Assembly: GCF_039654945.1 (NCBI RefSeq) | Contig: NW_027361838.1 | Span: forward strand, 21,328,001-21,392,000 | Direction of reading: 5' to 3' | Length of the DNA: 64,000 nucleotides | DNA from: Dendrobates tinctorius | Taxonomy: Eukaryota | In this document: positions 1-43,742 of the stretch, piece by piece | Layout: every line of letters starts with the position of its first letter | Position numbering within the stretch: the stretch's first letter is position 1 | Position numbers and translations under genes: made by a program | Notes under the pieces: model-generated | The model's database searches: none | What the model was told of the DNA's origin: nothing | Seen by the model: only the letters and a program-made list of their open reading frames with translations

Positions 1-680
1 GGACAGTGCAGGGATAAAGAAGCAACCCTCAATCCACCATCCCTTTAATAGGGAGGTGGAGAGGGACCGTTCGCCTCCTTGTATCATCCGGTTTAACAAT
101 GGTGATGCAGTGGGGGCTGCACGGACGCCAAGGAAGTGCCTCTGTACATCCAAGGGGTTCAATCCCCTAAGATGGGACAGGGCTGCTTGTCCGGCATTAT
201 GCCTGGCTTCAGAAGAGGGTACATGGAGGCGACACTCCATGTGCTCGTCTATTGATGGTATGAGGAGATCGGTGCCCTTCAAGGTACCCGTCGCCCCTAA
301 AAATCAGCTCAGGCATGGCGTCCCTCGTCACAGGAGAGGATATGTGGAGGAGACACTCCTCGTGCTCGCCTGTTGTTGGTTCGGAGAGATCGGAGCCTTG
401 AAAGGATCCGTCGCCCCTTCATTCGAGGAAAAAGTAAAAATCAAAAGTGTAAAAATTGAAAATTAAAATAAAAAAAGAATTTTTGGTCTGAACACAAGAC
501 CCGCGTGTCTCCTAGGGACACCAAGCAAGAACTGGTTCTCCTGGAGCCAGCATGAGGGTGTATACTGCAGAGGAGGAGCTAACTTTTTTTTTTTTTTTTT
601 TATATTCACTTAGTGTCAGCCTCCTACTGGCAGCAGCATAACACCCATGGTCTGAGTCTCCCAATGAGGCAAAGGAGAAA
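1..680 (-). mobile_element. 5' end (left ITR and leader) of a DIRS1-like retrotransposon that runs off the window
   Basis: About 530-680 is homologous to the ITRs at 17884-18023 and 42684-42824 and ends ..ggagaaa; the leader is homologous to 42490-42690. Confidence 0.8.
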
Positions 681-1284
681 ACATTTTAATGATGCACCGA
701 AGTAATCTAAGTACTGCAGCCAATTATGGCTACAGCAGCCCCAATGGTGGTAGAGCAATGTCGCAGCTAGGAGAGCATCAGCTTGTTATTTTTTACTGCT
801 CTAAGGCACTAGTGAACTTTTCATTTTGCCCAGACAACAGCTTTAATGTATGCTTTATACTACAAGGACTATTCATTTTCATACATTTTATTAGAGATGC
901 CAATTATTTTATCTTTTAGCTGGAGTATAGTTTTCAAGCTATTGTGGACCTGTCCGATAGTACACAGACAATATATTCATGTGAATGAGTAATGTGTAAT
1001 CTTAAATTGGTGCAGCTGGAAAATATATCTGTCATAGATCCCCATAGATTACAGGTGAATGCTGAGATCCCAGCAGGGAAGGGAGAACACGGACAAGCTC
1101 TGCTTGATAAAATGCATCTAACAATAAAGTGACAAACGAGAATGTAATTTCATAAATTACAACATTTTCTTACAGTCTAGGAAAAAAGTTTTGAGACTCG
1201 CACAAGTTTTGTTTTTCCAAAGTTTGCCGCTTTTGTGTTTTCAGATCTTTTAGACAGAAGTTTATATAGTACAATAAAGTATAA

Positions 1285-1480: not shown

Positions 1481-2406
1481 AATTGATCCTGACACTTTCT
1501 GGACATTGGGCACTTTGAAGCCTTCTTTAGAGCAATTGAGGCTCTCTGAAGTTATTGATGATCCAAAAAATGGTTGATTTAGGGGCAGTCTTACAAGCAG
1601 AAACGTCCTTGCCTGTAGAGCCCTTTCCATGCAAAACAATGATTACTACATGTTTCCTTGCCAGTAACCATGGCTAACAGAAGACAATTATTTCAAGCAC
1701 CAGCCCCCTTTTTTAAAAGCAACAGGTCTGCTCTTATAATTCAATCAACACGACAGTGCTATTAGCGGCTTTGTCCTCATTAACACTTTCTCCAAAGCTT
1801 AGGAGAAAAATCACTGAAAATTTGTGGTAGGGCTGAAATTCTGTTTCACTGGGGTTTTCATGGCAAGGAATGACTGCAATATTTTGCAATTTAACACTTC
1901 GTATACATTTAGAGTTAGTGCAAATTGCCACTATATACAGTAAAACGGAAAACTTTGTGAAAACCCAAAATTGCATCAGTCTCAAATCTTAACCATGTAT
2001 ATACAAGTTACAGTTTAGAGAACAAAGAAATTAAAGGGAATCTGTCACCCTATTTTTCGCCTATCAGCTGCCGACACCAGGGGCATTCTGTGATGCTGTA
2101 GATGAGCCCCCGATGTAACCTGAAAGATAAGAAAAATAGGGATTTTTGTGTAGTCACTGTAAAATCCTTTTCTCTGAGCCATTCACTGGGGGACACAGAC
2201 AGTGGGTGTTATGCTGCTGCCACTAGGAGGACACTAAGCAAACCAGAAAACAATTAACTCCTCCCCTGCAGTATACACCCTGTACCTGGATGAGATATGT
2301 CCAGTTCAGTGAAAAAAGCAGTAGGAGCTTAAACAGTCAACAGTAACGAACTATGTCAAAACCTGAGAATGCTACAAATGAGCCAGTAGGCTAAACAGGG
2401 CGGGTG

Positions 2407-2504
2407 CTGTGTCCCCCAATGAATGGCTCGGAGAAAAGGATTTTACGGTGAGTACACAAAAATCCCAATTTCTCCTACGCCTCATTGGGGACACAGACAG
2501 TGGG
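2407..2504 (-). other. DIRS internal complementary region (ICR), copy A
   Basis: Reverse complement of the left end (aaatagggattttt..) fused to the reverse complement of the right end (..ggcgtaggagaaa) through a shared TTT at 2469-2471. Confidence 0.9.
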
Positions 2505-2509
2505 ACGTC

Positions 2510-3742
2510 CTAAAGCAGTCCCTGGGAGGGGAGCATACATCTGCTAATACCCCATGTACCTCTGAGATAAGACTGAGGTACTGCCGATTGCAGGATGCGT
2601 CTGCCGAGAGCTGTATCTACAGAGGCCTGAGAATGAATTTGGTTATGTTTTGAAAAGGTATGCAGACTGGACCAAGTCGCAGCTTTGTAGACCTGTTCTG
2701 CCGAGGCCTGGCGCCGAATGGCCCAAGAAGCGCTGACTGACCGGGTATAGTGCGCCTTAATCCCCGATGGGACAGGCGCATTCCTGACACGGTAGGATTC
2801 CTGAATCACTGAGCGAATCCACCTGGCTAGCGTTGCTTTGGACACGGCTAGGCCCTTCCTATGCCCCTCTGGAAGTATCAACAGGGCATCTGACTTGCGG
2901 AAGGGAGCCGTCTGCGAGATGTACCGTCTCAGCGCCCTAACCACATCCAGGGTGGAGGGCCTTCTCAATGCGATGGACTGGCGCCGGACAAAAGAAGGCA
3001 AAACAATTTCCTCGTTGAGATGGAAAGAGGAAACGACCTTGGGCAGGAAGGACGGGGACGTCCTGAGAACTACCATATCCTGATGAAAAGTAAGGAATGG
3101 AGAACGGCAGGACAGAGCTGCCAATTCCGAAACCTGTCTGATTGACGCAATTGCTACTAGAAAGACCACTTTCCAAGAGAGGATGGTAAATGACACGTCC
3201 TGCAGCGGTTCAAAAGGATCCTCTTGTAAGGCCCCGAGAACCAGGTTAAGGTCCCATGGTTCTAATGGCCTTCTATAAGGAGGCGTCACATAGGAGACTC
3301 CTTGAATAAACGTCTTGACCTGAGGTTTGGTGGCAATTCTTTGTTGGAAAAGCACTGACAAGGCCGAAATTTGGCCCTTGAGCGAGCTAAGCGCGAGGCC
3401 TGATTTTAATCCGGATTGAAGAAACTCCAATATGCCCAGAATGGAGAACACTAGAGGGGAATGACCATGATCCTTGCACCATGAAAAGAAGATTTTCCAG
3501 GTGCGGTGATAGATACGTCTGAATACGGGCTTCCTAGCATTAATCATGGTGGAAATGATGTCGAGAGAGAATCCAGCCTGTGCTAAAATCCAGGATTCAA
3601 CGGCCATACCGTCAAAGACAGGGCCCCGGAGTTCTGGTGGTAAATCGGGCCCTGAGAAAGCAGATCTGAGCGATCTGGAAGTCGCTAGCGGACGTCGGCG
3701 ACTAGCTGTATTAGTTCCGCATACCATGCTCGGCGTGGCCAA
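2510..3742 (-). pseudogene. DIRS tyrosine recombinase (copy A), probably inactive
   Basis: 410-aa ORF with SIRQVSEL, KAHYTRSVSASWA and TWSSLHTFSKHN; copy B has SIRRISEL and TFTKHY, so the catalytic Arg and Tyr appear substituted in A. Confidence 0.85.
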
Positions 3743-5448
3743 TCTGGTGCGACTAGGATCACTGGTACCCCCTCTGCTCTTATCTTCTTGATGACCCTCG
3801 GAAGCAAGGGGGAAAGATGTACGGAAGCCAGAACCGGTGCCATGGCAGAACTAGGGCTTCCGCTCCGATGGCGCGTGGATCGCGCGATCGGGCAATGAAC
3901 CGAGACACCTTGCTGTTTAGCCTGGAGGCCATGAGGTCCACATACGGAGTCCCCAAACGAAGACAGATCTGGTGAAAGACTTCCGGATGAAGAGACCACT
4001 CTCCTGAGGCAATGGCTTGGCGACTGAGAAAGTCTGCAGCCCAATTTTCTATGCTGGGGATGTCAATTATTGAGATGTATGAATGGTTGGTCTCAGCCCA
4101 ATGGAGGATGTGACTCACTTTGTGCATGGCCATCCTGCTCCGGGTACCTCCCTGGCGTTTGATATACGCTACAGCCGTGGCGTTGTCCGATTGGATCCTG
4201 ATGGGGTGACCTGCGAAGAGATGGTGGAAACTACGTAGAGAAAATCTGATCGCTCGTTTCTCCAAAATGTTGATGGGGAGACGTGATTCTCGGGTTGACC
4301 AAAGACCCTATGCCGTGTGGTGACGAAAGACAGCACCCCAGCCGAGAAGACGAGTCGGTGGTTACTACCAACCATCTTACTGGGAGAAAAGACCTCCCTT
4401 GATTCAGGAAGGACCTCACAGTCCACCACTTGAGGGCTTGCCTGACCCGCAGGGACAGAAGGATTCGACGGTGCAGGGAGAACGGGTTCTTGTCCCAAGC
4501 TGACAGCAACGCATGTTGTAAGGGGCGGAGGTGGAACTATGCAAACGGAACTGCTTCCATGGCAGCCACCATTTTCCCGAGAACTCTCATGCTGAAACGA
4601 ATGGCGTGAGAGGCTGGACGGGAAAGAGTCCCGCACTGCCTGTTGTAAGGCTTGCGTCTTTTCCAGAGGGAGAATGACCCAACCCGCGGCAAGTGTCCAA
4701 GATCATTCCTAAAAAGGAAATTTGCTGAGCCGGTTTTGGGGAAGACTTTGCGAAGTTTATCTTCCACCCCAGGCGTGAAAGTGTATTTACTGTTATCTCC
4801 ACAGATTCTTCACAGGCTGAAAGGGACGGACCCTTGATGAGCAGGTCATCCAGATAAGGTAACACTACTCCTCCCCGAGAGTGGAGAATGGCCATGACAA
4901 CCGCCATGACCTTGGTAAAGACCCTGGGGGCAGTAGCGAGTCCGAAGGGCAAGGCCACGAACTGGAAGTGTTCCTCGTGAATTGCAAAACGCAGGAACTG
5001 CTGGTGAGACGGGCAAATCGGAATGTGAAGGTAAGCGTCCTTGATGTCGATGGATGCTAGGAACTCTCCTTTTTCCATGGAAGCGACCACTGACCGGAGA
5101 GATTCCATTTGGAATCGCCGAACCGTGACAAACTGATTTAACAGTTTGAGATCCAGAATGGGTCGCATCGTGCTGTCTTTCTTTGGAACCACAAAAAGGT
5201 TTGAATAAAATCCTCTGAACCTCTCGTGATGAGGGACCGGAATGATGACTCCGTCCCTTAAGAGGGCCTGAATAGCCCGAAGGAAGGCTCTGGTCTTTCC
5301 TTTGGGCGGAGAGGAAAGGAAAAAGCGAGTTGGAGGGGGAGCGGAGAACTCTATCTTGTATCCGGAGGACACCAGCTCCCTGATTCACTTGTTGTGGACG
5401 ACCGCGAGCCAGGTGTGGCTGAAGGAAAGTAGGCGGTCGCCGTCCGCC
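3685..5448 (-). pseudogene. DIRS pol: reverse transcriptase, RNase H and DAM-methyltransferase-like domain (frameshifted)
   Basis: RPILDLK, SIDIKDAYLHIPI, LPFGLATAPRVFTK, YLDD; IQSDNATAVAYI (RNase H); DLMASRLN..YIFPP..VILVAPDWPRRAWY (MT-like). Confidence 0.9.
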
Positions 5449-5462
5449 GGATACCGCAACAA

Positions 5463-5942
5463 AAGATTTGATATGTAAGCTGTTTTTTGGTATGCACCTG
5501 TTCAGACTAGTTCTAGATGTGCCGTCAGTTTTTTCTGTCATTTGTATGTTAGCTTTCTGACTGAGCACTCCCCCTTCATCAGGCTGTGATTTTAATTACA
5601 TCCAACCACATTTTGGTTCCTATCTTCCTATAAAACAGGCTTTACCATGTTATTAGCCAGAGGTTAGTTCACACTAGGCAGTTAGTATAGGGACCCGTTC
5701 AATGAGATCACCTTGACGTTGGTGAATGGGCTCACATCTTTTGGCCAAATTTTGTGCTAAGTATCTCATATGTTTTTCTAGATTACAAAAGCCATTATAC
5801 TATTCGTATATCACATATTTCATATTTGATATGCCTTAATGCAATTGAGTGCAACCATTTCCTTATTTGATATGTAAGCTGTTTTTTGGTATGCACCTGT
5901 TCAGACAAGTTCTAGATGTGCCGTCAGTTTTTTCTGTCATTT
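5463..5942. mobile_element. Non-coding 1.2-mer of a 399-nt unit (retrozyme-like or Penelope-mobilised) inserted in DIRS A
   Basis: 14-bp TSD ggataccgcaacaa (5449-5462, 5943-5956); about 78-nt direct repeat at 5466 and 5865; absent from DIRS B. Confidence 0.8.
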
Positions 5943-5957
5943 GGATACCGCAACAAG

Positions 5958-7457
5958 TCATTGGGTAGATCTATGAGACCTGGCTCCCTTGGAACCAGAA
6001 GCCCTAGGTCTGGGTTTCCAAGAGCAGTTAGGGTCTGTACGAGACCTGGGAGCCTCTGTATCCGCGCGGAGACGGACCTGATCCGGAAGAGAAGGTAGAG
6101 GATGATCAACCAGAGTGGTTGCGAAAGAAACGAAAGCGCGTCGACTGTTGGTTGCGAAACGGCCAAGCAGCTTTTTGTTGAGGGAGGAATTTACTCTCCC
6201 CCCCCCCCCGGTAGCATCAGAAATGAGCTGATCTAGCTTCTCTCCAAAAAGACGACCCATTTGAAAGTGGAGAGAAGTCAACGATCTTTTAGATGTGGCA
6301 TCCGCCCGCCAGTCGCGAAGCCATAGGACTCTTCTAATGGAGATCGCGTTAGCGACAGTTTGAGCAGCGCAATTGGCGGCGTCAAAAGAGGCGCCCACTA
6401 CAAAGTCTGCTGCGTGAATTATCTGCCTGGCGACCGTGGTTGCTTCCAGAGGAAGATTGGTGTCCTGGAAGGAGGTAATCAAGACCTCTGCCCAAGCGGC
6501 CATTGCTTTCGTGACCCAAATTGCCGCAAAAGATGGAAAAAGCTCTGTTCCTGAAGCTTCAAAAACTGAACGGGCAAGGTAGTCAATCTGACGATCGGAG
6601 GGGTTTCTGATCGAGGAACCCTCGGACACAGACAGAAGCGTTTTTGAAGCCAGATGCGATACAGGCGGGTCCACCAGAGGGGACTGTAACCAATCTTTCA
6701 TTGAGTCTGGGTCAAAAGGGTATTTAGCCTGAGTAAACTTTTGCCCTGTGAACTGCTTATGAAGACGATCCCTATGTTGCTGGACAACTTCCTTAAAGTC
6801 CGGATGGCTGGTAAATAACCTGTGCAACCGCTTGGTTTTCTTAAGTGAAATAGGATGTGCTGGAGCGGGAACATTATCCTCATCCAACTTCAGAATCCTG
6901 TTAACTGATTCTGTAAGAGAATCAAGCGACTCTTGATCAGTTGGGGGATTCTGAGGGGCAGACGAGTCAGAATCAAATTCAGAGTCGAGCTCGCTGAGAA
7001 CTCCAGGAGAGGGAGAGCGAGAGAGACAGGCGTCGCAGGGTTTAGAGGCGCGAACGGGGCTAGGGGAAGCGTCATGGGTCCGCTTTCTAGAGCCCCGACC
7101 ATCCCTTGAACGAGTACGGCCCCTGCTGGTGGACGGTTCCCGTTCGACGCCAGAGCCTTCCTCGGGGGGTAAGGACGCCTTCTGGCTTAAAGAGCCCTCC
7201 CGGAGGGAGAATATAGCCTGGGTCAGAGACTCCACCGACTGACAGGGATGCAGCCCACTCAGGGGTACTAAACGCAGGAGACCCGTCAGCAGCGGTGGCA
7301 AGGGGCGATTGAGCGCAGGTCGGGGCGCAGGCCGGGTCGCAGTTAGTGCATAATGGATTAGTCTGTGCACTAGGTAAGGCAGACTTGCAAGAGGTACACA
7401 CGGTAAAAAAACGCAGTGCTTTTTAGCAGCCCGTTTCGCTTCCTTAGATTGAGACAT
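5958..7457 (-). pseudogene. DIRS gag-like ORF1 (copy A)
   Basis: 499-aa ORF with compensating frameshifts; PLVDPPVSHL, RRVLWLRDWRADATSK, GRLFGEKLDQLIS motifs; CxxC..CxxC in the alternate frame near the start. Confidence 0.85.
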
Positions 7458-9256
7458 AGCGCTCCTGAAAGGGTTAACGGCAGAGTCTGCTGCAGCTGCA
7501 GGGAACGTGCCAGGAAGGGGTTAAGCTTTAATCTGAGGGCAGATGCAGCTTATCTGGTCCTATGCTGTGTCCCCCGGGAGGAATGGTGGTCGCCCTGCGG
7601 TGTCACCCGGTATCCGGCAGAATGCTCGCCTCACAGCTCGTATCCAGAGCAGGCTGAGGTAAAAGGATATGGCCCCCGATACTAGGATTGCGCGTCTCGT
7701 CAGGATGAGATTATAACACAAAACCGTTTAGCACAGCTATAAAGTGGTGGTGCAACAAGTAGGATTCTAGTCTGTAATCATATGAATATAGAAACTTGGC
7801 ACACACAGTATATATGATTTCCAGTAAAAAAGTGATTTTTTAATATGCAGTACATACAGTATAGACGTTTCGGTCACACTGACCATCACAGTACTGCAAA
7901 AAATAATAATTGAAATAATCATAATAACAGAAGTATATACAATAATCAGAGTATCTGGGACACAAAGAAGGTTGCAGATGATGTCCGTAATATATCAGAC
8001 ATTAGTAGCACATACATGATTATATTTCAAAAAGAGCATTTTTGCCCAAAAAACCAAGATCATAATACCAATAGGATGAATCATTCATTAAATGCAGTGT
8101 AAACATACCTATGTATTGTATTGCTGTCATTTGCATAATGCTCAATAGAGGGAGAGCCAAAAAGGTAAGTGGTCCTGTGTGGTGAGAGATAAAAATCTCC
8201 TATTGTATGCCATTAACTATAGTACATTGTGAGAGGTGACAGGAGGAGTTAATGTACATACCCTCCAGGAGTAGGGACAAAAGGCAAAGCTTTGCAGAGT
8301 CTGTGAAATCAAAATGGAGAATGCTCCTTGTTAGCAGACAGAGCAATGAGGCAGAGAGTCCTAAAGCGGTGGGGGAGGGGTATGAGTGAAGTGCTTACCG
8401 GTCCGGTCAGTATGCAGCATGTAGGACAATGACACGGCATCCACCGCGGGTCAGAGGAGCCCTTTCCAGTGTCTGCGGCTTCTATAAATAGGTGCCAAGA
8501 TGGCAGCAGACGAGGAAGTATGAGACCGGAAATGACATTGCTGTGCACTCCTAATGCGATCCCCAGGCAGGAGGAGGGAGGTCTCAGTGATGACGTCACT
8601 GTGCATTCGAGAAGTGCTGTGAGCATTCCACTAATAGGAAGTGTCCTGTGTAGCAGAGAAAATTTTCCCCATACTAACGTTCTTGAAAGGGGAAAAAACA
8701 GAATATCATGTGAATAGTGGTGAATTCTGTGCATGTTAGAACGGCTGTGAATAATCCAGACGGCTCTATATTACACTTTGGGGATGTGGTGGTTCAGTGA
8801 AGAGCAAGTAATTAGAAATCTCCGTGAGGTATACATATATTTAGTGCTGTAGATTCTGAAAAAGGAAAATGTATTAGAAGTAGAAAGAATAAAATATACA
8901 GCATCATATATCTCTTGATGATTCAAAACAGAAATGATTGGATGTCATAATCCCTATTTAACCCTTTAGGGGTCAATGTCTGGAGCTCATGAATCCAAAA
9001 AGCCTCACTTTTTTTAGAAAATTAATGCGATTACCACCTCTGCGTGGCACATTCACCTGCTCAATTACTTGATATCTTAATTGGGCTATAGTATGGCCCA
9101 CTGTGACAAAGTGATGAGGTACTGGCAGCAGGGGTGGATTAAGGGTAGTCCGGGCCCCAGGCTGTTCAGACTCTGTGGGCCCCCGATCATGTGACGGGGT
9201 CGGGAAGTCACTAGTTTTCATGTCGCATACGGTGCGTCAAGGGGCGGGAAGGGGTT

Positions 9257-16250: not shown

Positions 16251-16896
16251 TGTACTGTACATTAAAAATCACTTTCACTGGAAATCATATATACTGTGTG
16301 TGCCAAGTTTCTATATTCGTCAGGATGAGAGGCGCCAAGGCGAGGGGGCAGCGCTATTCAAATTGCGGCCTAGTAGGCCGGAGAAGCCGGGGGCTAGATT
16401 TTCGGGCCTACCCGAGGTAGGCGCCGGTGGGCGGGCCGGTGCTAGTGGGCGGCGCCATTTAAATTGCGGCCTACCAGGCCGGAAAGCCGGGGACCGCCGC
16501 TGACGCAACATCAGCGCTACTCCCGGGGGACAGGACCCGACCCCATACCTCTACTCCAGTGCTCAGCGCTGTCCGGCCATCCATGCAGGCTCTCATCCTC
16601 CAGGGCTGATGTAGCAGAGCTGGAGGAGTTCTTAAAGGGGACATGCTCAATCGATCCTCCCTATGATAGGGGGATGGAGAGCTATGGGGCTGATTCAGGG
16701 CCTACGTAAGCGCTGTCCAGTCTTCTCCGTTACGTGCGCCTGCCCTCATATTCGTGGATTACCGGACGCAAGCATCATCGCCAATGCTAGAGGAATCAGC
16801 CCCAAACGTCGCAGGAAAGTGTACGTGAAGGGTTACTCCACGTGCTTGCCTGTTGTTGGTTCGGGGGAGAGCGGGCCGTAGAAAGGAATCGTCGCC

Positions 16897-17773
16897 TGTC
16901 ATGAACTCATTTTCTGCTCCATCAGTTGAGAGTTCCCCCTTCCGTTCTCCCTCTGGTGGTGACAGGAGGTAGTGCGGTTGGTTTAAGTGGTCGTGATCTG
17001 CCACCTGATAAGGAAGATAACGATTGGATCTCTGGAGTATCAGACTGGATATAAGACTGCCGACGCCCTATCCAGGTGCTGGTGATTCAGTCTGCTTCTC
17101 AGGTCCTGGACTTCAGCTCTCTTCCAGTCTTCTCAAGTTAAGTTATTTTTGCTAATGTTCACACTTGCGCTTGTTGGTCAATTCAGTTTTTTGTGCAATC
17201 AGCCTGCCCCTGCTGGGGCTATGCTGAAATTCCACTCCTATTAATCAGTATTTGCCAATCTGATTTTTGTCCCTTATTAGAGTGGCCTCTTTTTTGCTCT
17301 GTCTCTGAAATATTCTGAGTGCTGATATAGGTTTAGAAGTCTAGTGACTTCAGGGTTAATTTTGCTATCAGAAGTGTTGGACAATATTTTTGTAGGGTTT
17401 TTTTGGCAGATTGCAGACAGTGTCTTTCCTTTGCTGTCCTTTTTAGTTAGCCGGGCCCCATCGTTTGCTCAGCCTATTTTCCTGCCTTTGTTTGTATTTT
17501 CATCTTGTTTCACAGTCAATACATGTGGGGGGGCTGTCTTTCCTTTGGGGTCTGCTCTGGGGCAGTTAGTTAGTTTTCCTCTTTTCCTGCTTTAGGCTTA
17601 TGTAGTTCTCCGGTTGTGACGAGGCGTCTAGGACCAACGTAGGAACGCTCCACGACTGCTGCTAGTTGTGCGGTTAAGATCAGGGATCTGCAATCTGCAT
17701 AGTTACCAACTTCTCTGGTTTTCTGAGACTTAGCTTGTTGTCTTTTTTCCTCTTCGGTTTCCTATTCATAATA
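16897..17773. mobile_element. Solo LTR inserted in the DIRS A leader
   Basis: tgtcatgaa..ttcataata termini, 6-bp TSD gtcgcc; absent from DIRS B. Confidence 0.8.
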
Positions 17774-27138: not shown

Positions 27139-30100
27139 GAAGACTGGAAAGCATGTATTTGGAAGTCGCCTTGCTACACTTGTAAGGAGAGCTTTAAACT
27201 AGAACAACATGGGAAGGGAAGCAAAAGACCAGAAAAAGCCATACACCTGACAAATGCTATTGAGAACTCTGCTAATAGAAGTGGAAAGGAAGAACAAAGA
27301 CGAAAGAATCTAATTAATAAAAATATTGGAGAAAGAGAAACCAATCACAAACTAAAATGTTTCTATACTAATGCACAAAGCATGGGCAACAAACAAGGAG
27401 AATTGGAACTACTAACACAGGAAAAGAAATATGATGTCATTGGAACCACTGAAACTTGGTGGGACAATACACATGATTGGAATACAAGGCTAGAAGGATA
27501 CAACTTATTTGCAAGAAACAGACTTGATAAACGAGGAGGAGGTGTTGCATTGTATGTTAGAAACGCGTATATCTGCACAGAGATTGAAGCTTCAGAGACT
27601 GGGAGTTCTGTGGAAACTGTTTGGGTAAGAATACAAGGACAGAACAATGGAAAGGACACCATTGTAGGCATTTACTACAGGCCGCCTGTGCAAGCTGAAG
27701 ATATGGATGAACTCTTTATGCATCAAATGGCCAAGTTCTCCAAAAAATATGACATAGTTGTCATGGGAGATTTCAACTATCCAGACATTTGTTGGGAATC
27801 TCTCTCAGGCAAAACTAACAGGTCAAGGAAATTCTTATCCTCTCTTGCTGACAACTTTATCTTCCAAAAGGTAGGGGAGAAAACAAGGGGAACTGCTACC
27901 TTGGATCTAATCCTTATAAACAGGGAGGAAATGGTTGAGGAGGTAAAAGTGGCTGGAACCCTAGGAGGTAGCGACCATGCTATTTTAGAATTTTGGATAA
28001 CTAGAGGCGGAAGACCTGTGAAGACTCAGACGTCAAGGTTAGATTTCAGAAAGGCAGATTTTAAGGGATTCAGAAAGAGAATTGGAGGGATCCAATGGCT
28101 GGATATCCTTAAAGACAAAAATGTCCAGGAAGGATGGGAAATCTTGAAAAATGAAATTCTCAAAGCACAGTTGTTAACAATTCCGAAAAGAGGGAAGAAT
28201 AGGAAGCATTTAAGGAAACCAGGATGGGTGAACACAGAACTTAAGCACATGCTAAAAAGGAAGAAAAAAATGTTTATAAAATGGAAAGAGGGAGGCATAT
28301 CTAAAGAAGAATATAATGCTGTCTGCAGAATCTGCAGGGCACAAATCAGATTATCTAAAGCTGAAAATGAATTGAGGCTTGCAAGAGATGTCAAAAGCAA
28401 TAATAAAGGATTCTGGGGATATGTCAAAAGTAAAAGAAAAGTCAAAGATGCTATAGGATTTTTACAGGATGAAAATGATGAAATGGTAAGACAGGATGTT
28501 GAGAAGGCTGAACTTTTAAATTCCTATTTTGCATCTGTTTTCTCTCAGAAAGGAAATGTAACACCAACTGTTATTCACTGTCCTATTAAGGGAATAGAAG
28601 AATCCAGGATATCTATAAACAGAAAGATAGTGAGGAAACACTTAGCTAACCTAAATGAATTCAAGTCTCCAGGTCCAGATGAATTACACCCCAGAGTACT
28701 GAAGGAGATAGCAGAAGAAATTTTTGAACCCCTCTCCATAATCTTTGAAAATTCTTGGAGAACAGGAGAAGTGCCAGAAGACTGGAGAAGAGCAAATGTT
28801 GTTCCTATCTTCAAAAAGGGGAAGAAGGTGGACCCAGGCAACTATAGGCCGGTGAGTCTGACTTCTATACCAGGAAAGATCTTTGAACAAATTATTAAAC
28901 AACATGTAAGTCAATACCTGGATAAGAATGAAGTGATCAAACAGAGTCAGCATGGGTTTGTAACTAATAAGTCATGTCAGACTAACTTAATTTCCTTCTA
29001 TGACGGTATCACTGATTGGGTGGATCAAGGAAATGCTGTAGATATAGTATATCTTGACTTCAGCAAAGCATTTGACAAAGTCTCTCATACAATCCTTATT
29101 GAAAAAATGACTAAGTATGGAATGGACAAGGCAACTGTTAGGTGGATTCATAGCTGGCTTAGTGATCGGACCCAAAGAGTGGTCGTAAATGGCTGCACAT
29201 CCAGTTGGAAGAATGTCTCAAGTGGGGTACCACAGGGCTCTGTCCTGGGCCCTGTATTGTTCAACATCTTTATCAACGATTTAGATGAAGGAATTGAGGG
29301 TAAACTGATTAAATTTGCTGATGACACAAAGCTAGGAGGGATAGCTAATACTAGAGAAGAGAGAGAGAGAGGATTCAAAAAGATTTAAATAAACTGGAGA
29401 AGTGGGCAGTAACTAACAGAATGGTTTTTAACAGGGAGAAATGCAAAGTACTACATCTGGGCAATAAAAATGAAAAAAGCATATATAGAATGGGAGGAAT
29501 AGGGCTAAGTGACAGCACATGTGAAAAAGACTTGGGTATACTAATAGATCACAGACTGAATATGAGTCAACAGTGTGATGCAGCAGCAAAAAAGGCAAAT
29601 GCAGTTCTAGGATGTATTAACAGAAGCATACAGTCTAGATCACGTGAAGTCATTATTTCCCTCTACTCCTCTTTGGTCAGACCTCATCTGGAATAGTGTG
29701 TCCAGTTTTGGGCACCACATTTTAAAAAAGACATCAACAAACTGGAGCAAGTTCAGAAAAGAGCGACCAGAATGGTGACCGGTCTGCAAACCCTGTCTTA
29801 TGAGGAAAGGTTGCAGGATTTGGGAATGTTTAGTTTGCAAAAGAGAAGACTGAGAGGAGACTTAATTGCTGTCTACAAATATCTAAAGGGCTGTCACATT
29901 GTAGAAGGATCAACTTTATTCTCATTTGCACAAGGAAAGACTAGAAGCAATGGGATGAAACTGAATGGGAGGAGACACAGATTAGATATTAGAAAAAACT
30001 TTTTGACAGTTAGAGTGATCAATGAGTGGAACAGGCTGCCACGAGAAGTGGTGAGTTCTCCTTCAATGGAAGTCTTCAAACAGAGGCTGGACAGACATCT

Positions 30101-34735: not shown

Positions 34736-36701
34736 CAATGGGTACAGAAAGTATTCAGACCCCTTTAAATTTTTCACTCATTGCAGCCATTTGGTAAATT
34801 CAAAAAAGTTGATTTTTTTCTCATTAATGTACACTCTGCACCCCACCTTGACTGAAAAAAACAAACAAATGTAGAAATTTTTGCAAATTTATTAAAAAAG
34901 AAAAACTGAAATATCACATGGTCATAAGTATGCAGACCCTTTGCTCAGTATTGAGTAGAATCACCCTTTTGAGCTAGTACAGCCATGAGTCTTCTTGGGA
35001 ATGATGCAACAAGTTTTTCACACCTGGATTTGGGGATCCTCTGCCATTCTTTATTGCATATCTTCTCCAGTTCCGTCAGGTTGAATGGTGAATGTTGGTG
35101 GACTCCAGAGATGCGCAATCGAGTTTAAGGGTACCGTTACACCTAGCGATGCACCAGCGATCCCGACCAGCGATATGACGCGGTCAGGATCGCTGGTGCA
35201 TCGCTAGGTGGTCGCTAGTGAGCTGCCACACAGGCAGATCTCACCAGCGACATCGCTGGGGACGGGGATCGCTACTTACCTGTCAGACGAGGCGATCCTG
35301 CGTCCTCCTGCCTGCGTCCACGGAATGGAATGGTCCAGGAGCTTCTCACGCGATCAACGATAACCAGCGGGGGAGCCGGTCGGAGGCAAGTATCACATGC
35401 AGCGATATCGCTAGCAAAATCGCTGCAACGTCACAAAATCGGTGACTTTACAGTGATATTGCTAGCGATATCGCAGTGTGTAACGGGGCTTTAGTCAGGA
35501 TTCTGGCTGGGCCAGTCAATAATGGTCACAGAGTTGTTCTGAAGCAACGTCTTTGTTATTTTATCTGTGTGCTTAGGGTAATTGTCTTGTTAGAAGGTGA
35601 ACCTTCGGCCAAGTCTGAGGTTCAGAGCACTCTAGAAGAGGTTTTCATCCAGGATCTCTCTGTACTTGGCCGCATTCATGTTTCCTTCAATTGCAACCAG
35701 TCGTCCTGTCCCTGCAGCTGAAAAACACCCGCATAGCATGATGCTGCCACCACCATGTTTCACTGTTGGGCTTGTATTAGGCAGGTGATGAGCAGTGCCT
35801 GGTTTTCTCCACACATACTGCATAGAACTTCTTGGTGATAATTGTATCTTCGTCTTATCAGACCGGAGAATCTTATTTATCATAGTCTGGGAGTCCTTCA
35901 TGTGTTTTCTTTTTAGCAAACTTTATGTGGGGTTTCATATATCTTGTACTGAGGAAAGGCTTCTATCGGGACTTTCTGCCATAAAGGCCCGACTAGTGGA
36001 GGGCTGCAGTGATAGTTGACTTGTGGAACTTTCTCCCATCTCCCTACTGCATCTGTGGAGCTCAGCCACAGTGATCTTAGGGTTCTTGTTTACCTCTCTC
36101 ACTAAGGCTCTTCTCCCACAATTGCTCAGTTTGGTTGGACGGCCAGGTCCAGGAAGACTTCTGGTGATCCCAAACTTCTTCCATTTAAGGATTGTGGAGG
36201 CCACTGTGCCCTTAGGAACCTTGAGTACTGCAGAAATTATTTTGTAACCTAGGCCAGATGGGTGCCTTGCCACAATTCTGTCTCTGAGCTTCTTGGCCAG
36301 TTCCTTTGACCTCACGATTCTCATTTGGTCTGACATGCACTGTGAGCTCTTATATAGACAGGTGTGTGCCTTTACAAATCAAGTCCTATCAGTTTAAACA
36401 CAGCTGGACTCCAATGAAGGAGTAGAACCATCTCAAGGAGGATCACAAGGAAATGGACAGCATGTGACAAATATGAGTGTCTGAGCAAAGGGTTTGAATA
36501 CTTATGACCATGTAATATTTCAGTTTTTCTTTTATAATAAGTTTGCAAAAATTACTAAATTTCTGGGGGGTTTTTCAGTCAAGATGGGGTGCAGAATGTA
36601 CATTAATGACAAAAACAATGAACTTTTTTGAAGTTACCAAATGGCTGCAATGAAACAGAGTGAAAAATTTAAAGGGGTCTGAAAACTTTCCGTACCCATT
36701 G
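34736..36701 (-). mobile_element. Tc1/mariner element (degenerate) with a nested MITE
   Basis: TA|caatgggtacagaaagtattcagacc..ggtctgaaaactttccgtacccattg|TA; PTVKHGGGSIMLCGCF, GLGYKIISAVLKVPKGTV. Confidence 0.92.
35128..35490. mobile_element. PIF/Harbinger-like MITE
   Basis: Same family as 12461-12849; TTA flanks. Confidence 0.85.
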
Positions 36702-37041: not shown

Positions 37042-40000
37042 AAATAGGGATTTTTGTGTACTCACAGTAAGATCCTTTTCTCCGAGCCATTCATTGGGGG
37101 ACACAGACAGTGGGTGTTATGCTGCTGGCCACTAGGAGGACACTAAGTAAATCAGAAAAAAAAGTTAGCTCCTCCCCTGCAGTATACACCCTCTCGCTGG
37201 CTGAGATTTCTCCAGTTCGGTGAAAAAGCAGTAGGAGCATAAATAGTCAACAATAACCATAATTATGTCAAAACCTAAGAATGCTACAGTGAGCCAATAG
37301 GCTAAACAGGGTGGGTGCTGTGTCCCCCAATGAATGGCTCAGAGAAAAGGATTTTACAGTGAGTACACAAAAATCCCTATTTCCCCTACGCCTCATTGGG
37401 GGACATAGACAGTGGGATGTCTTAAAGCAGTCCCTTGGTGGGGAGCATACAACTGCTAATACCCCATGTACCACTGAGTCAACACTGAGGTACTGCCGAT
37501 TGCAGGATGCGTCTGCCGAGAGCTGCATCCGCAGAGGCCTGAGAATGAATTTGGTAATGTTTTGTAAAAGTATGCAGATTGGACCTAGTCGCAGCCTTGC
37601 AGACCTGTTCTGCCGAGGTCTGGTACCGAATGGCCCAAGAAGCGCCCACTGACCGGGTAGAGTGCGCCTTAATCCCCGCTGGGACAGGCGCGTTCCTGAC
37701 ACGGTAGGGTTCCTGAATCTTCAAGCGAATTCACCTGGCTAGCGTTGCTTTTGACGCGGCTAGACTCTTCCTATGCCCCTCTGGAAGTATGAACAGGGCA
37801 TCTGACTTGCGGAAAGGAGCCGTCCGCGAGATGTACCGTCTCAGCGCCCTAACCACATCCAGGGTGTGGAGGGCCTTCTCAATGCGATGGACTGGCGTCG
37901 GACAAAAGGAAGGCAAAACAATTTCCTCGTTGAGATGGAAAGAGGAAACGACCTTGCGCAGAAAGGACGGGGACGTCCTGAGAACTACCTTGTCCTGATG
38001 AAAATTCAGGAAAGGAGAACGGCAGGACAGGGCTGCCAATTCCGAAATTCGCCTGATTGACGTAATTGCCACTAGAAAGATCACATTCCAAGAGAGGACG
38101 GTCAGTGACACGTCCAGCAGCGGTTTGAAAGGAGCCTTCTGTAAGGCCCCGAGAACCAGGTTAAGGTCCCATGATTTCAAAGGCCTTCTATAAAAGGAGG
38201 CGCCACATGGGAAACTCCCCGAATGAACGTCTTGACCTGAAGTTTGGTGGCAATTTTGCGTTGGAAAAGCACTGACAAGGCCGAAATTTGGCACTTGAGC
38301 GAGCTAAGCGCGAGGCCTGATTTTAGTCAGGCTTGAAGGAATTCCAATATAGCTGGAATGGAAAACACCAGAGGGCATCGACCATGATCCTTGCACCACG
38401 AAAAAAAAAAAAAAAAAAGGTTTTCCAGGTGCGGTGATAGACGCGCATGGACAGGCTTCCTAGCACTAATCATGGTGGAAATCACGTCGTGAGAGAACCC
38501 AGCCTGTTCAACTGGCACGCCGTGAAAAACAGGGCCCCGGAGTTCTGGTGGTAAATCGGGCCCTGTGAGAGTAGATCCATGCGATCTGGAAGTCGCCAGG
38601 GGACGTCAGCGACTAGTTGTATTAGTTCCGCATACCATACTTGGCGCGGCCAATCTGGCGCGACTAGGATCACTGGTACTCCCTCTGCTCTGATCATCTT
38701 GATGACCCTCGGAAGCAAGGGAAGAGGGGGAACATGTATGGGAGCTGGAACTGGTGCCATGGCAGAACTAAGGCGTCCGCTCCGATGGCGCATGGATCGC
38801 GCGATCAGGCAATGAACCGAGGCACCTTGTTGTTTAGTCTTGAGGCCATCAGATCCACATCCAGAATCCCCCAACGATGACAAATCTGCTGAAAGACTTC
38901 CGTATGATGAGACCTCTCCCGAGGCAATGCCTTGGCGACTGAGAAAAATCTGCTGCCCAATTTTCTATGCCCGGGATGTGGATTGCCGAGATGGGCGAAT
39001 GGTTGGTCTCGGCCAAAAGGAGGATGTGAATCACTTTGTGCATGGTCATCCTGCTCTGGGTACCTCCCTGGAAGTTGATATACGCTACAGCCGTAGCGTT
39101 GTCAGATTGGATCCTGATGGGGTGACCTGCGATTAGACGGTGGAAACTACGTAGAGCTAATCTGACCGATCGTATCTCCAAAACGATGATGGGGAGACAT
39201 GACTCTCGGGTCGACCAACGACCCTGTGCCGTGTGGTGACCGCACCTCAGCCGAGAAGACTTGTGTCGGTGATTACTATCAACCATCTTGCTGGGAGAAA
39301 AGACCTCCCTTGATTCAGGGAGGACCTCAGTGTCCACCACCTGAGGGCTTGCCTGACCCGCAGAAACAGAAGGATCCGGCGGTCCACAGAGAACGGGTTC
39401 TTGTCCAAGCTAACAGCAACGCATGTTGTAAGGGACAGAGATGGAACTGTGCAAATGGAACTGCTTCCATTGCATCCACCATCTTTCCGAGAACTCTTAT
39501 GCTGAAACGAATGGCGTGAGAGGCTGGACGGGAAAGAGTCCCGCACTGCCTGTTGTAAGGCTTGGGTCTTTTCTGAAGGGAGAATGACCAACCCGCGGGA
39601 AGTGTCCAAGATCATTCCTAAAAAGGAAATCTGCCGAGCCGGTATTGGGAAAGACTTTTCGAAGTTTATCTTCCACCCCAGGCGAGAAAGTGTATTTAGT
39701 GTTATATCCACGGATTCCTCGCAGGCTGGAAGGGACAGACCCTTTATGAGCAGGTCGTCCAGATACGGTAACACCACTACTTCCCGAGAGTGGAGAATGG
39801 CCATGACAGCAGCCATGACCTTGGTAAAGACCCTGGGGGCAGTGGAGTCCGAAGGGCAAGGCAACGAACTGGAAGTGTTCCTTGTGAATTGCAAAATGCA
39901 GGAACTGCTGGTGGGACGGGCAGATCGGAATATGAAGGTAAGCGTCGATGGATGCTAGGAACTCTCCTTTTTCCATGGAAGCGACAACTGATCGGAGAGA

Positions 40001-42824
40001 TTCCATTCGGAATCACCGTACCTTGACAAACTGATTTAACAGTTTGAGATCCAGAATGGGTCGCATCGTCCCGTCCTTCTTTGGAACCACAAAAAGGTTT
40101 GAATAAAATCCTCTGAACCTTTCGTGATGAGGGACCGGAATGATGACTCCGTCCCTTAACAGAGCCTGAACAGCCCGAAGGAAGGCTCTTGTCTTTCCTT
40201 TGGGCGGAGAGGAAAGGAAAAAGCGAGTTGGAGGGGGAGCGGAGAACTCTATCTTGTATCCGGAGGACACCAGCTCCTTGACCCACTTGTTGTGGACGAC
40301 CGCGAGCCAGGTGTGGCTGAAGGAAAGTAGGCGACCGCCTACTTTGTCAGAGTCCGCCGGATACCGCAACAAGTCATTGGGTAGATCTATGAAATCTGGC
40401 TCCCCTAGATCCAGAAGCCATAGGCCTGGGTTTCCAAGAGCGGTTAGGTCTGTATAAGACCTGGGAGCCTCTGTCGCCGCGCAGGGACCGACCGGATCCG
40501 GAAGAGAAGGTAGAGGAGGAACAACCGGAATTGTTGCGAAAAGATCGAAAACGCGTTGGTTGTTGGTTGCGAAACGTCCAAACAGCCTTTTGTTGAGGAA
40601 GGGATTTACTTTTTCCCCCGGTAGTATCAGAAATGAGCTGGTCCAGTTTCTCTCCAAAAAGACGACCCATTTGAAAGTGGAGAGAAGTCAACAATCTTTT
40701 AGATGTGGCATCCGCCCGCCAGTCGCGGAGCCATAGGGCTCTTCTAATGGAGATCGCATTAGCGGCAGTTTGAGCAGAGCAATTGGCGGCATCAAAAGAA
40801 GCGTCCACTACAAAGTCCGCTGCGTGAACTATCTGCCTGGCGACAGTGGTTGCCTCCGGAAGATTGGTGCCCTGGAAGGAAGTAATCAAGACCTCTGCCC
40901 AAGCGGCCATTGCCTTAGTGACCCAAATTGCCACGAAAGATGGAAAAAGTGCTGCTCCTGAAGCTTCAAAAACTGAACAGGCAAGGTAGTCAACTTAACG
41001 ATCGGAGGGGTTTCTGACTGAGGAACCCTCAGAAACGGATAGGAGCGTTTTAGAAGCAAGACGCGATACCGGAGGGTCCACTGGAGGGGACTGTAACCAA
41101 TCCTTCATTAGGTCTGGATCAAAAGGGTATTTAGCCTGAGTAGACTTTTGCCCTGTGAACCGCTTATGTGGACGATCCCTATGTTTCTGGACAATTCCTA
41201 AAGTCCGGATGGCTGGTAAATACCCTGCGCACACACTTGGTTTTCTTAAATGAGATAGGGTGTGCTGGAGCGGGAATATTTTCCTCATCCAACTTCAGAA
41301 TTCTGTTGACTGATTCTATAAGAGAATCAAGCGACTCTTAATCAGTTGGGGGATTCTGAGGGGCTGTCGTGTCAGATTCGAATTCAGAGTCGTGCTCGCT
41401 GTGAACCTCAGGAGAGAGAGAGCGAGAGACAGGAGTTGCAGATGCTGAAGCGCGAACGTGACTAGGGGACGCGTCATGGGTCCGCTTTCTAGAGACCTGA
41501 CCATCCCTTGAACGAGTACGGCCCCTGCTGGTGGACGGTTCCCGGCCGACGCCAGAGCCCTCCTCGGGAGGTAAGGACATTTTCTGACTTAAAGAGTCCT
41601 CCCGGAGGGAGAATATAGCCTGGGTTAGAGACTCCACCGACCATCACAGGGACGCAGCCCACTCAGGGGTACTAAACGCAGGAGGCCCGTCAGCCGCGGC
41701 GGCGAGGGGCGTTTGAGCGCAGGCCGGGTCGCAGTCTGTGCATAACGGATTAGTCTGCACTGGGCAAGGCAGACTTGCAAATGGTACACACAGTAAAAAA
41801 CGCAGTGTGCTTCTTAGCAGCCCGTTTAGACTCCTTAGATTGAGACATAGCGCTCCTAAAAGGGTTAACGGCAGAGTCTGTCTGCAGCTGCAGGGAATGT
41901 GACAGGAAGGGGTTAAGCTTTAATCTGAGGGCAGATGCAGCTTACCCACGGTCCTGTGCTGTGTCCCCCGGGAGGAAAGCGGTGGCCCTGTGGTGTCACC
42001 CGGTATCTGGCAGCGTGCACGCCTCACAGCTCGTATCCAGAGCAGGCTGAGGTAAAAGACATGGCCCCCGAGATTAGAATTGCACGTCTCATAAGAGGTG
42101 CTAAGAGGAGGGGGCGGCGACGTTATCGCGGGCGGCGCTATTCAAATTGCGGCCTAGTAGGCCGGAAAAGCCGGCGACTACATTTTTGGCCTACCCGCGG
42201 TAGGCGCCGGGCGCGATGGGGCGCCGCTGACGCCAAACCTCCACACTCCAGTGCTCGGCAGGGCGCGCTGTCCGGGGCCATCCATGCAGGTCTTCTCATC
42301 CTCCTGGGCTGATGAAGTAGAGCTGGAGGAGTTCTATGGCAGGAGGATGGAGAGCTATGGGGCTGATTCAGGACATTCGTAAGCGCTGTTCCAGTCTTCT
42401 CCATTGCAGTCCATGCGCTTGCCCTCGTATCCGTGGATTACCGGGACCGTAAGGATCATCGCCATCATCGCCAGAGGAATCAGCCCCAATTGTCGCAGGA
42501 AAGTGTATGGGGAGGTATACTCTGCGTGCCTGCCTGTTGTTGGTTCAGGGGAGAGTGGGCTGTAGAAAGGAACCGTCGCCCCCTTCACTCCGTTAAATAA
42601 AAATTTACAGAAAAATCAAAAATAAAATATAAATGGTGGGGTCTGAAACCAGATTCAAGTGCCTCCTATAGACACTAAGCAAGAACTGGAGAAATCTCAG
42701 CCAGTGAGAGGGTGTATACTGCAGGGGGGGAGCTCACTTTTTTTTTGGTTTACTTAGTGTCCTCCTAGTGGCCAGCAGCATAACACCCACTGTCTCTGTG
42801 TTCCCCAATGAGGCGTAGGAGAAA
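37042..42824 (-). mobile_element. DIRS1-like retrotransposon, copy B, full length (5783 bp), uninterrupted but frameshifted
   Basis: aaatagggatttt..ggcgtaggagaaa ends, ITRs, ICR about 37318-37416; gag from ATG 41848, pol about 40400-38480, YR about 38500-37479 (HSTRSVGASWA..TFTKHY). Confidence 0.95.
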
Positions 42825-43742
42825 TTGGAGGTACATATACATAATATACTGTGAATAAGCACACAATCAGTGCAGAGAGAACTGTTAGATCTACAAATCA
42901 ATAAGACAGCATAGATGTATAACTCGTCACTGAATAATGTGTAGGACTAAACTAGTGCACATAATTTCTGCATTTAGTGTACCAGTCAATAGAAGTTAAC
43001 GTAGAGGGTCAAAGATTGTAGGCAGGTGCATATAATCATAAAATTATCAAGAAGATCATATATTCACACAAACCATGACCCATCAAATGAAACATACAGC
43101 CTAATGATACCACATCAATATATGGTAGCGAGCACACTTTTTTTGTGATTATTCAATGAATAATGGCGATCATGTGATTGGGGACTGAAAAAACTGGACC
43201 TGGTCATGTTGTCCAGGGTCTCAGCTACCCCTGGTAACTGAGACCACGGAGATTTTTTTCAGACATGGGGGTGGGGTGCTATTGGCTTATTTCCAGCCAC
43301 TGTTTTAAAACGGCGATGAGGGGAAAAACGACTCTTATTGGCCGCCGTTTTAATGCGTATTGGCGGTTGTTAAGGGGTTAAGTGGCTAAACTGCAAAAAA
43401 ACAAACCAAGCTGCAGTTGCAGCAGCTACAGGCAGATGCCAGCTAAGTAACACAGCTGGCATCTGCCTGTTAATAAGCCAGATCATCGCCTGAGCTGGTT
43501 TAATACGTTCCTTCGAGACCCATGATGAAGATGCATGTCCCAGTTATACAAGGGGTGAAATCAGGAGTTCCAACCCATGAAGTTCTATATAGTCATGTAT
43601 GGTTAATGAACAAAAATAATGCATAAATAATCACATTCCTTTTACGGCCATCGAGAAGCCAAACTGAAATACGTGCAGAGAAATTGCATTGGATAATAAC
43701 TGTAGAAGACATATATGTAAAAAAATATATCTTAAAACTCAC

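Follow-up and report, generated by a model that had tools for sequence, protein, structure and literature searches.

On the minus strand of the window (the whole 64-kb stretch of DNA analysed here), we found four homologous units of ~90 nt, A to D, each made of two adjacent hairpins and placed in the 5' leader of DIRS1-like retrotransposons. The pattern of substitutions fits selection for base pairing in the lineages that were active, and the twin hairpin is, as judged from sequence comparison, a likely cis-acting element of the retrotransposon RNA. The reading that we favour, with a probability of about 0.5, is a selected, modular secondary-structure element of the leader of DIRS genomic RNA, most likely serving protein recognition or dimerisation.

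The positions that a first-pass annotation had given for the four minus-strand units were right, both by k-mer matches and by a covariance model, and the linker sequences were as it gave them. In unit A (329-418) hairpin 1 occupies 417-383, the linker 382-373 and hairpin 2 372-331; its single-sequence fold has a minimum free energy of -32.1 and a z-score of -2.7, its covariance-model score is 106 bits, and two mismatches private to this copy (360 and 343) interrupt the upper stem of hairpin 2. A spacer (299-328, minus strand), whose AUG in a Kozak-like setting is not kept in the C/D family, separates it from unit B (205-298; hairpin 1 at 297-262, linker at 261-252, hairpin 2 at 251-210), where the upper stem of hairpin 2 is a perfect 8-bp helix (z -1.8 for the unit, 96.7 bits). 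Unit C had been reported as split, and the split is real. The outer G-run and GGCGAC of its hairpin 1, GGGGGCGAC, stand apart at 17782-17774 on the minus strand, upstream of an unrelated insertion of 877 bp (16897-17773) that is flanked by a 6-bp duplication of GGCGAC; the hexamer appears again at 16896-16891, where the 3' part of the unit begins and runs to the end of hairpin 2 (16812-16896, minus strand; hairpin 2 at 16852-16812). This unit folds into hairpin 2 only (z -1.7, 88.9 bits). Unit D (42496-42583, minus strand; hairpin 1 at 42583-42547, hairpin 2 at 42536-42496) is a decayed copy in which both hairpins are weakened, mostly by G>A changes (z +0.4, 87.1 bits). A 17-mer from hairpin 1 matches all four units, and a 21-mer spanning the linker and the first part of hairpin 2 finds three of them at no more than one mismatch, with none expected by chance. 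The covariance model built from the units (R1) recovers just these four in the window, at 87-106 bits; in a search of 83 kb the runner-up scored 13 bits, and no further copies were found in the window or in contigs L172-L176. A vestigial second unit in the C/D family (42476-42375 and 16795-16700) was considered and rejected (alignment z of at most 2.1 against shuffles, fold z above 0). Long-range pairing partners of the units elsewhere in the element were limited to complementary matches of 9-10 nt, at about chance frequency.

The host elements are DIRS1-like retrotransposons, with inverted terminal repeats (ITRs), an internal complementary region, a LAP2alpha-type Gag and a reverse transcriptase (RT), and the placement in DIRS 5' leaders proposed by the first-pass annotation is thereby borne out at the level of the DNA. 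The element carrying A and B, whose body extends past the start of the window, has its 5' ITR at 540-690 (minus strand), complementary to the 3' ITR of a neighbouring DIRS at 2183-2281. For element D, the 5' ITR at 42683-42828 (minus strand) has as partners the 3' ITR at 37042-37218 and the internal complementary region at 37318-37409, which is complementary to both termini; its ORFs are broken and match the LAP2alpha domain typical of vertebrate DIRS Gag as well as RVT_1. Pfam matches were obtained with E = 1.9e-10 and 8.9e-13 for PF11560 (the LAP2alpha domain, Gag) and with E = 2.2e-07 and 6e-21 for RVT_1. The ITR core of these elements is CATTGGGGGACAC. From the 5' end the order is ITR, T-rich tract, unit or units, ~650 nt more of leader and then gag, so that the units lie ~100 nt inside the 5' ITR and downstream of the T-rich tract (419-495 on the minus strand, between the ITR and unit A). 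The leaders of the two families had been described as otherwise divergent, which is half right: the leader downstream of the motif diverges, but the upstream 5' ITR is conserved between the A/B and C/D families as well as the motif itself. Upstream ORFs starting from the end of the T-rich tract were considered as a conserved feature and dropped, as they are not kept between families. ARAGORN detected no tRNA-like fold in 1-1000, and complementarity to tRNA 3' ends was not established.

An equivalent T-rich tract precedes the hairpins in the C/D family and in two distant families represented by contigs L173 and L174. The tracts (419-495 and 42584-42650, both minus strand, 275-298 in L173 and 101-133 in L174) contain TTTATT in all four families, that is AATAAA on the opposite strand. 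In L173 and L174 the tract ends in a pyrimidine run followed by AG, resembling a splice acceptor, and in the families of the window it ends in GAAG before the G-run; no GT..AG joint was seen in the RNA-library contigs.

The window holds several other mobile elements. A fourth DIRS copy, at about 2128-7750 on the minus strand, is 5'-truncated near 7720, has its ITR and internal complementary region at 2128-2477 and a direct repeat with a 399-bp period at 5466-5946, between gag and RT, and retains an intact 499-aa Gag ORF (7457-5958), whose closest relatives are found in the poison frogs Dendrobates and Ranitomeya, in the dendrobatid assemblies GCA_039654945.1 and GCA_958301615.1. At 53250-53630 (plus-strand coordinates) lie the 3' ITR and internal complementary region of a fifth DIRS, from a different family with core TTCATTGGGGGACACAGGTAACC; no 5' end of this element was detected in the window. 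We also observed a 668-aa ORF with Exo_endo_phos and RT domains, from a non-LTR retrotransposon (27382-29388, plus strand), and a fragment of the HTH domain of a Sleeping Beauty/Tc1-type transposase (35935-36336, minus strand).

Folding of the units recovered the two hairpins that had been proposed. Single-sequence ViennaRNA folds gave both hairpins in A and B, hairpin 2 alone in C and neither in D, and RNAalifold, run unguided on the four units, returned the same two hairpins with 20 pairs. Standard pairs fill 90.2% of the cells of the proposed stems and 35-53% after a shift of the 3' partners by 1-3 columns, a control that is weak because the structure was derived from, and tested on, the same four sequences, which belong to two related families. 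Both hairpins had been said to share a module with a 1x1 C.U mismatch, and its C and U are indeed invariant in both hairpins of all four units; of the 10 linker columns, 7 do not vary. Among the four units, three pairs (columns 52-87, 54-85 and 60-77) change on both sides with pairing kept. The z-scores over the units that fold are modest, -1.7 to -2.7, and sliding windows show that the neighbouring leader folds more strongly (z -4.2 for 100-11, -2.7 for 205-101). For the units in tandem the prediction is a diffuse ensemble, and the first hairpins of A and B can pair with each other.

Downstream of unit B, the minus strand of 11-100 is predicted to form a long hairpin (-39.3 kcal/mol, z -4.2, equalled by none of 200 shuffles). 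In each of the four sequencing runs described below, contig depth in the leader peaks far above the rest at its core, 27-64, reaching up to 40,000 in one of them (X6), and many contigs have only this 38-nt piece in common with the leader. The hairpin could represent another conserved element of the leader, or else a segment common to other repeats.

Other copies of the A/B family show what the hairpins looked like before this copy decayed. Contigs of two DNA and two RNA-library runs, under three organism labels, were aligned to 1-760 at 80% likeness, and the majority letters were described position by position from the rows listed. The units are deeply covered in each of the four runs, which makes the family an abundant one in several related frogs; the RNA-library contigs over the units are undirected, and DNA carry-over is possible among them. 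At 385 and 263 the majority letter turns a G.U pair into G-C, at 251 it turns U.G into C-G, at 360 and 343 it replaces the two mismatches by U-A and C-G, and at 285 it adds a pair to the apical stem of unit B. Wherever the copy in the window departs from the majority at a listed stem position (385, 263, 251, 360, 343 and 285), then, the majority pairs better, which means that the source elements had cleaner hairpins. The upper stem of hairpin 2 had been called degraded. For unit A this holds at 360 and 343 of the present copy, but the defects are private to it, and with the majority letters the family has an uninterrupted 8-bp helix here. Minority letters at 248 and 250 would change A-U to G.U. 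The window letters at 213, 223, 240, 344 and 361 are taken to be those of the majority, since these positions do not appear among the rows listed. The same contigs, from DNA and RNA libraries, contain the joints 237>361, 237>368 and 242>368 and back-joints of about one period, indicating copies with one unit fewer or more, so that the tandem duplication already proposed for this family is borne out and its copy number is variable.

The comparison of paired and unpaired columns suggests that the stems were protected while the lineages were active. The genes of the sister copies C and D are broken, so what distinguishes the two is mostly neutral decay. Their differences fall in paired columns in 10 of 12 cases and in unpaired ones in two. 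When unit A, corrected with its six known majority letters, is compared with the columns in which C equals D, three differences are paired and nine unpaired, and two of the three paired ones form the compensatory pair 54-85. The contrast between lineage-level differences and C/D decay gives a Fisher p = 0.012, on small counts. Between majority A and majority B there are 12 differences, four of them in stems, and these four make up two complete compensatory pairs with no uncompensated change; if the 12 differences are placed at random, at least two complete pairs with no single stem hit arise with p = 6e-5. The signal would thus consist mainly of protected stems, together with the pairing of the few changes that stems did accept.

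Among six Logan/ENA contigs examined, L173 and L174 alone reach the ITR-proximal leader. L173, whose Gag is 33% identical to that of the window and whose ITR is alignable at the DNA level, shows two neighbouring hairpins (301-336 and 338-383, z -2.0) immediately behind its T-rich tract. GGGGAC..GUCCCC closes one and GUGGAG..CUCCAC the other, and the second of these sequences is the same as the upper-stem core of hairpin 2 in the window. In L174, too, the T-rich tract is followed by two hairpins (z -2.6). The R1 model did not match the hairpins of either contig, so that deep homology is positional and anecdotal. A further distant DIRS family, in contig L175 (Gag P0076), has three tandem modules GGTGAGC..(16-20 nt)..GCTCCCC at 33-70, 140-178 and 193-228, each a potential hairpin with a U.C mismatch and resembling GG-C-GAG / CUC-U-CC. 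The idea that a GG-Y-GA / UC-Y-CC module recurs in other DIRS leaders was set aside as a likeness without statistical support: the bare pattern GGYGA..TCYCC occurs 16-19 times per strand in the window, so recurrence is not evidence. Gag searches returned many frog homologues. Searches with a degraded Gag fragment, with the spurious antisense ORF across the units for further contigs, by exact look-up of the intact Gag of the window, and with Gag and RT against viral contigs gave no matches, and the 15-nt linker gave no more than chance matches in viral contigs. Against metagenome contigs a 21-mer had 52 matches, which were discarded, as almost all came from one coding context (...LDEPTTGLH...), presumably bacterial UvrA/ABC-type ATPase genes, and none had the flanks of the motif.

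Part of these observations could also arise in a leader that evolves neutrally, in which homologous GC-rich pieces contain chance or inherited inverted repeats and seem to compensate through transitions and through CpG decay in methylated transposon DNA. The compensatory substitutions that the first-pass annotation put forward hold to the extent that three pairs change on both sides, but covariation taken alone is weak in four related sequences, with p = 0.056 for at least two complete pairs and p = 0.37 for at least one. Moreover, pair 60-77 lies within an ACGU/ACGU CpG palindrome, a setting in which two neutral decays easily pass for compensation, and a hand count of single stem transitions (alignment A3) gives ~6 that preserve a pair and ~6 that break one, as expected without selection. 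The modest z-scores, the equal conservation of the upstream ITR and the chance frequency of the short GGYGA..TCYCC modules point the same way. What argues for selection instead is that neutral decay strikes the stems while lineage differences spare them, that majority A and majority B show no uncompensated stem difference, that majority letters mend every private stem defect at the positions listed above, and that distant families have two hairpins at the same place. We therefore consider a purely neutral origin unlikely. If the units were instead a promoter or enhancer monomer downstream of the ITR, the inverted repeats and linker would be protein sites on double-stranded DNA. Such a monomer would be in keeping with a variable tandem copy number, with a place at the 5' end beside a repeat thought to carry the promoter (PMC7192593), and with a single-stranded linker that is among the best-conserved parts. 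It would not call for co-change at a distance of 20-40 nt, and yet three pairs co-change; nor does an invariant C.U mismatch within otherwise perfect helices have an obvious meaning in duplex DNA, and we regard this account as distinctly improbable.

The question of the strand bears on the same choice. The G.U pairs had been read as favouring the sense strand, a claim that did not survive, since they are private C>U decays of the copy in the window (385, 263 and 251) and the majority helices consist of Watson-Crick pairs throughout, so that the complement folds too. The antisense fold of unit A equals the sense one and that of unit B is better (-41.9 kcal/mol, z -4.1, the most stable fold seen). 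Equal folding of both strands is what the complementarity of a DNA-level monomer predicts, and the antisense fold of unit B would also suit a structure acting in single-stranded minus-strand cDNA, near its 3' end, where it might help to prime the second strand, to form circles or to load the recombinase. DIRS-1 is amplified by way of a linear single-stranded cDNA, with priming steps that are not known (PMC7192593), which leaves room for a role of the cDNA strand. Models of DIRS end repair, however, rely on the ITRs and the internal complementary region rather than on the leader, and the units are not terminal but ~100 nt inside the ITR, which makes a cDNA function very improbable. The annotation had further entertained a ribozyme. 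HDV-like ribozymes occur in R2 and L1Tc, and hammerheads in Penelope-like elements. A self-cleaving or otherwise catalytic RNA in the leader would have a precedent in the ribozymes that retrotransposon 5' ends sometimes carry, as with the HDV-like one of L1Tc (PMC3383444). A scan of the whole 64-kb window against Rfam matched no family at the gathering threshold, and at E <= 10 the best matches in 1-900 were unrelated families far below their thresholds. The units are two simple hairpins lacking a multi-helix junction, a pseudoknot and a conserved catalytic core, and catalysis is hardly credible here. The proposal of a cis-acting DIRS RNA element thus keeps its leader position and its stem pattern and loses the ribozyme and the sense-strand preference.

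In the selected RNA structure that we favour, a unit would be a pair of imperfect hairpins side by side, both closed by a GG-C-GA / UC-U-CC module whose C.U mismatch is conserved, with a conserved, single-stranded and A/C-rich linker between them; it would follow closely on the 5' ITR and a U-rich tract. We infer that sense RNA would be the active form. The unit would most likely be a recognition site for the element's own Gag or RT, or a site of RNA-RNA dimerisation, and would in this way mark the transcript for packaging or reverse transcription, much as pairs of hairpins do in retroviral leaders. A modular unit of this kind would explain why copies hold from one to several in tandem. DIRS elements account for a large fraction of certain amphibian genomes, and the LAP2alpha domain of vertebrates derives from their Gag (PMC4495291). 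In Dictyostelium the DIRS-1 mRNA is without most of the left repeat and the intermediate is a linear single-stranded cDNA, and for DIRS replication neither the primer of reverse transcription nor the signal for RNA packaging or template choice is known (PMC7192593). Neither leader hairpins nor cis-acting RNA signals of DIRS elements were described in the DIRS literature searched, in agreement with the earlier statement that no description was known. It is possible, although we put this forward only tentatively, that the twin hairpin with its C.U modules is the first cis-acting RNA signal of tyrosine-recombinase (DIRS) retrotransposons, at which a LAP2alpha-like Gag or RT selects its own RNA, with a position conserved across anuran DIRS families and a dose tunable by tandem copy number. 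A defined RNA structure in the leader would be a concrete handle on how DIRS elements recognise their own RNA and a sequence-and-structure marker for annotating DIRS 5' ends; if the units are merely a conserved leader block, their value is limited to annotation.

Among known systems, the ribozymes known from the 5' ends of retrotransposons, for instance the HDV-like L1TcRz (PMC3383444), Penelope-like hammerheads and retrozymes, have in common with the units that they are structured RNAs near the 5' end, but here there is neither an Rfam match nor a catalytic core or junction architecture. The TIPIRT region of Ty1 is likewise a structured 5' region of a retrotransposon RNA, with several cis functions in Ty1, where a pseudoknot and tRNA-primer contacts overlap the gag coding sequence (PMC5454406, PMC6844567). 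The units, in contrast, are two simple hairpins far upstream of gag, with no similarity to tRNA genes or primer-binding sites found (ARAGORN, 1-1000). Mouse L1 5' monomers and LTR enhancer repeats are DNA promoter modules without paired covariation. They resemble our units in being ~100-200 bp long, in lying at the 5' end of a retroelement and in varying in copy number, but in the DIRS units stem partners change together. Pairs of hairpins in retroviral 5' leaders act in packaging and dimerisation, for example the GACG pair SL-C/SL-D of the murine leukaemia virus type. Like SL-C and SL-D, the hairpins described here would be adjacent imperfect stem-loops in a 5' untranslated leader upstream of gag, apparently conserved across related lineages with compensatory changes. 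Unlike them, they share no sequence similarity with that pair and have no GACG tetraloops, and the putative signal that they form belongs to a tyrosine-recombinase retrotransposon with a LAP2alpha-like Gag, in which the unit is repeated in tandem in variable number.
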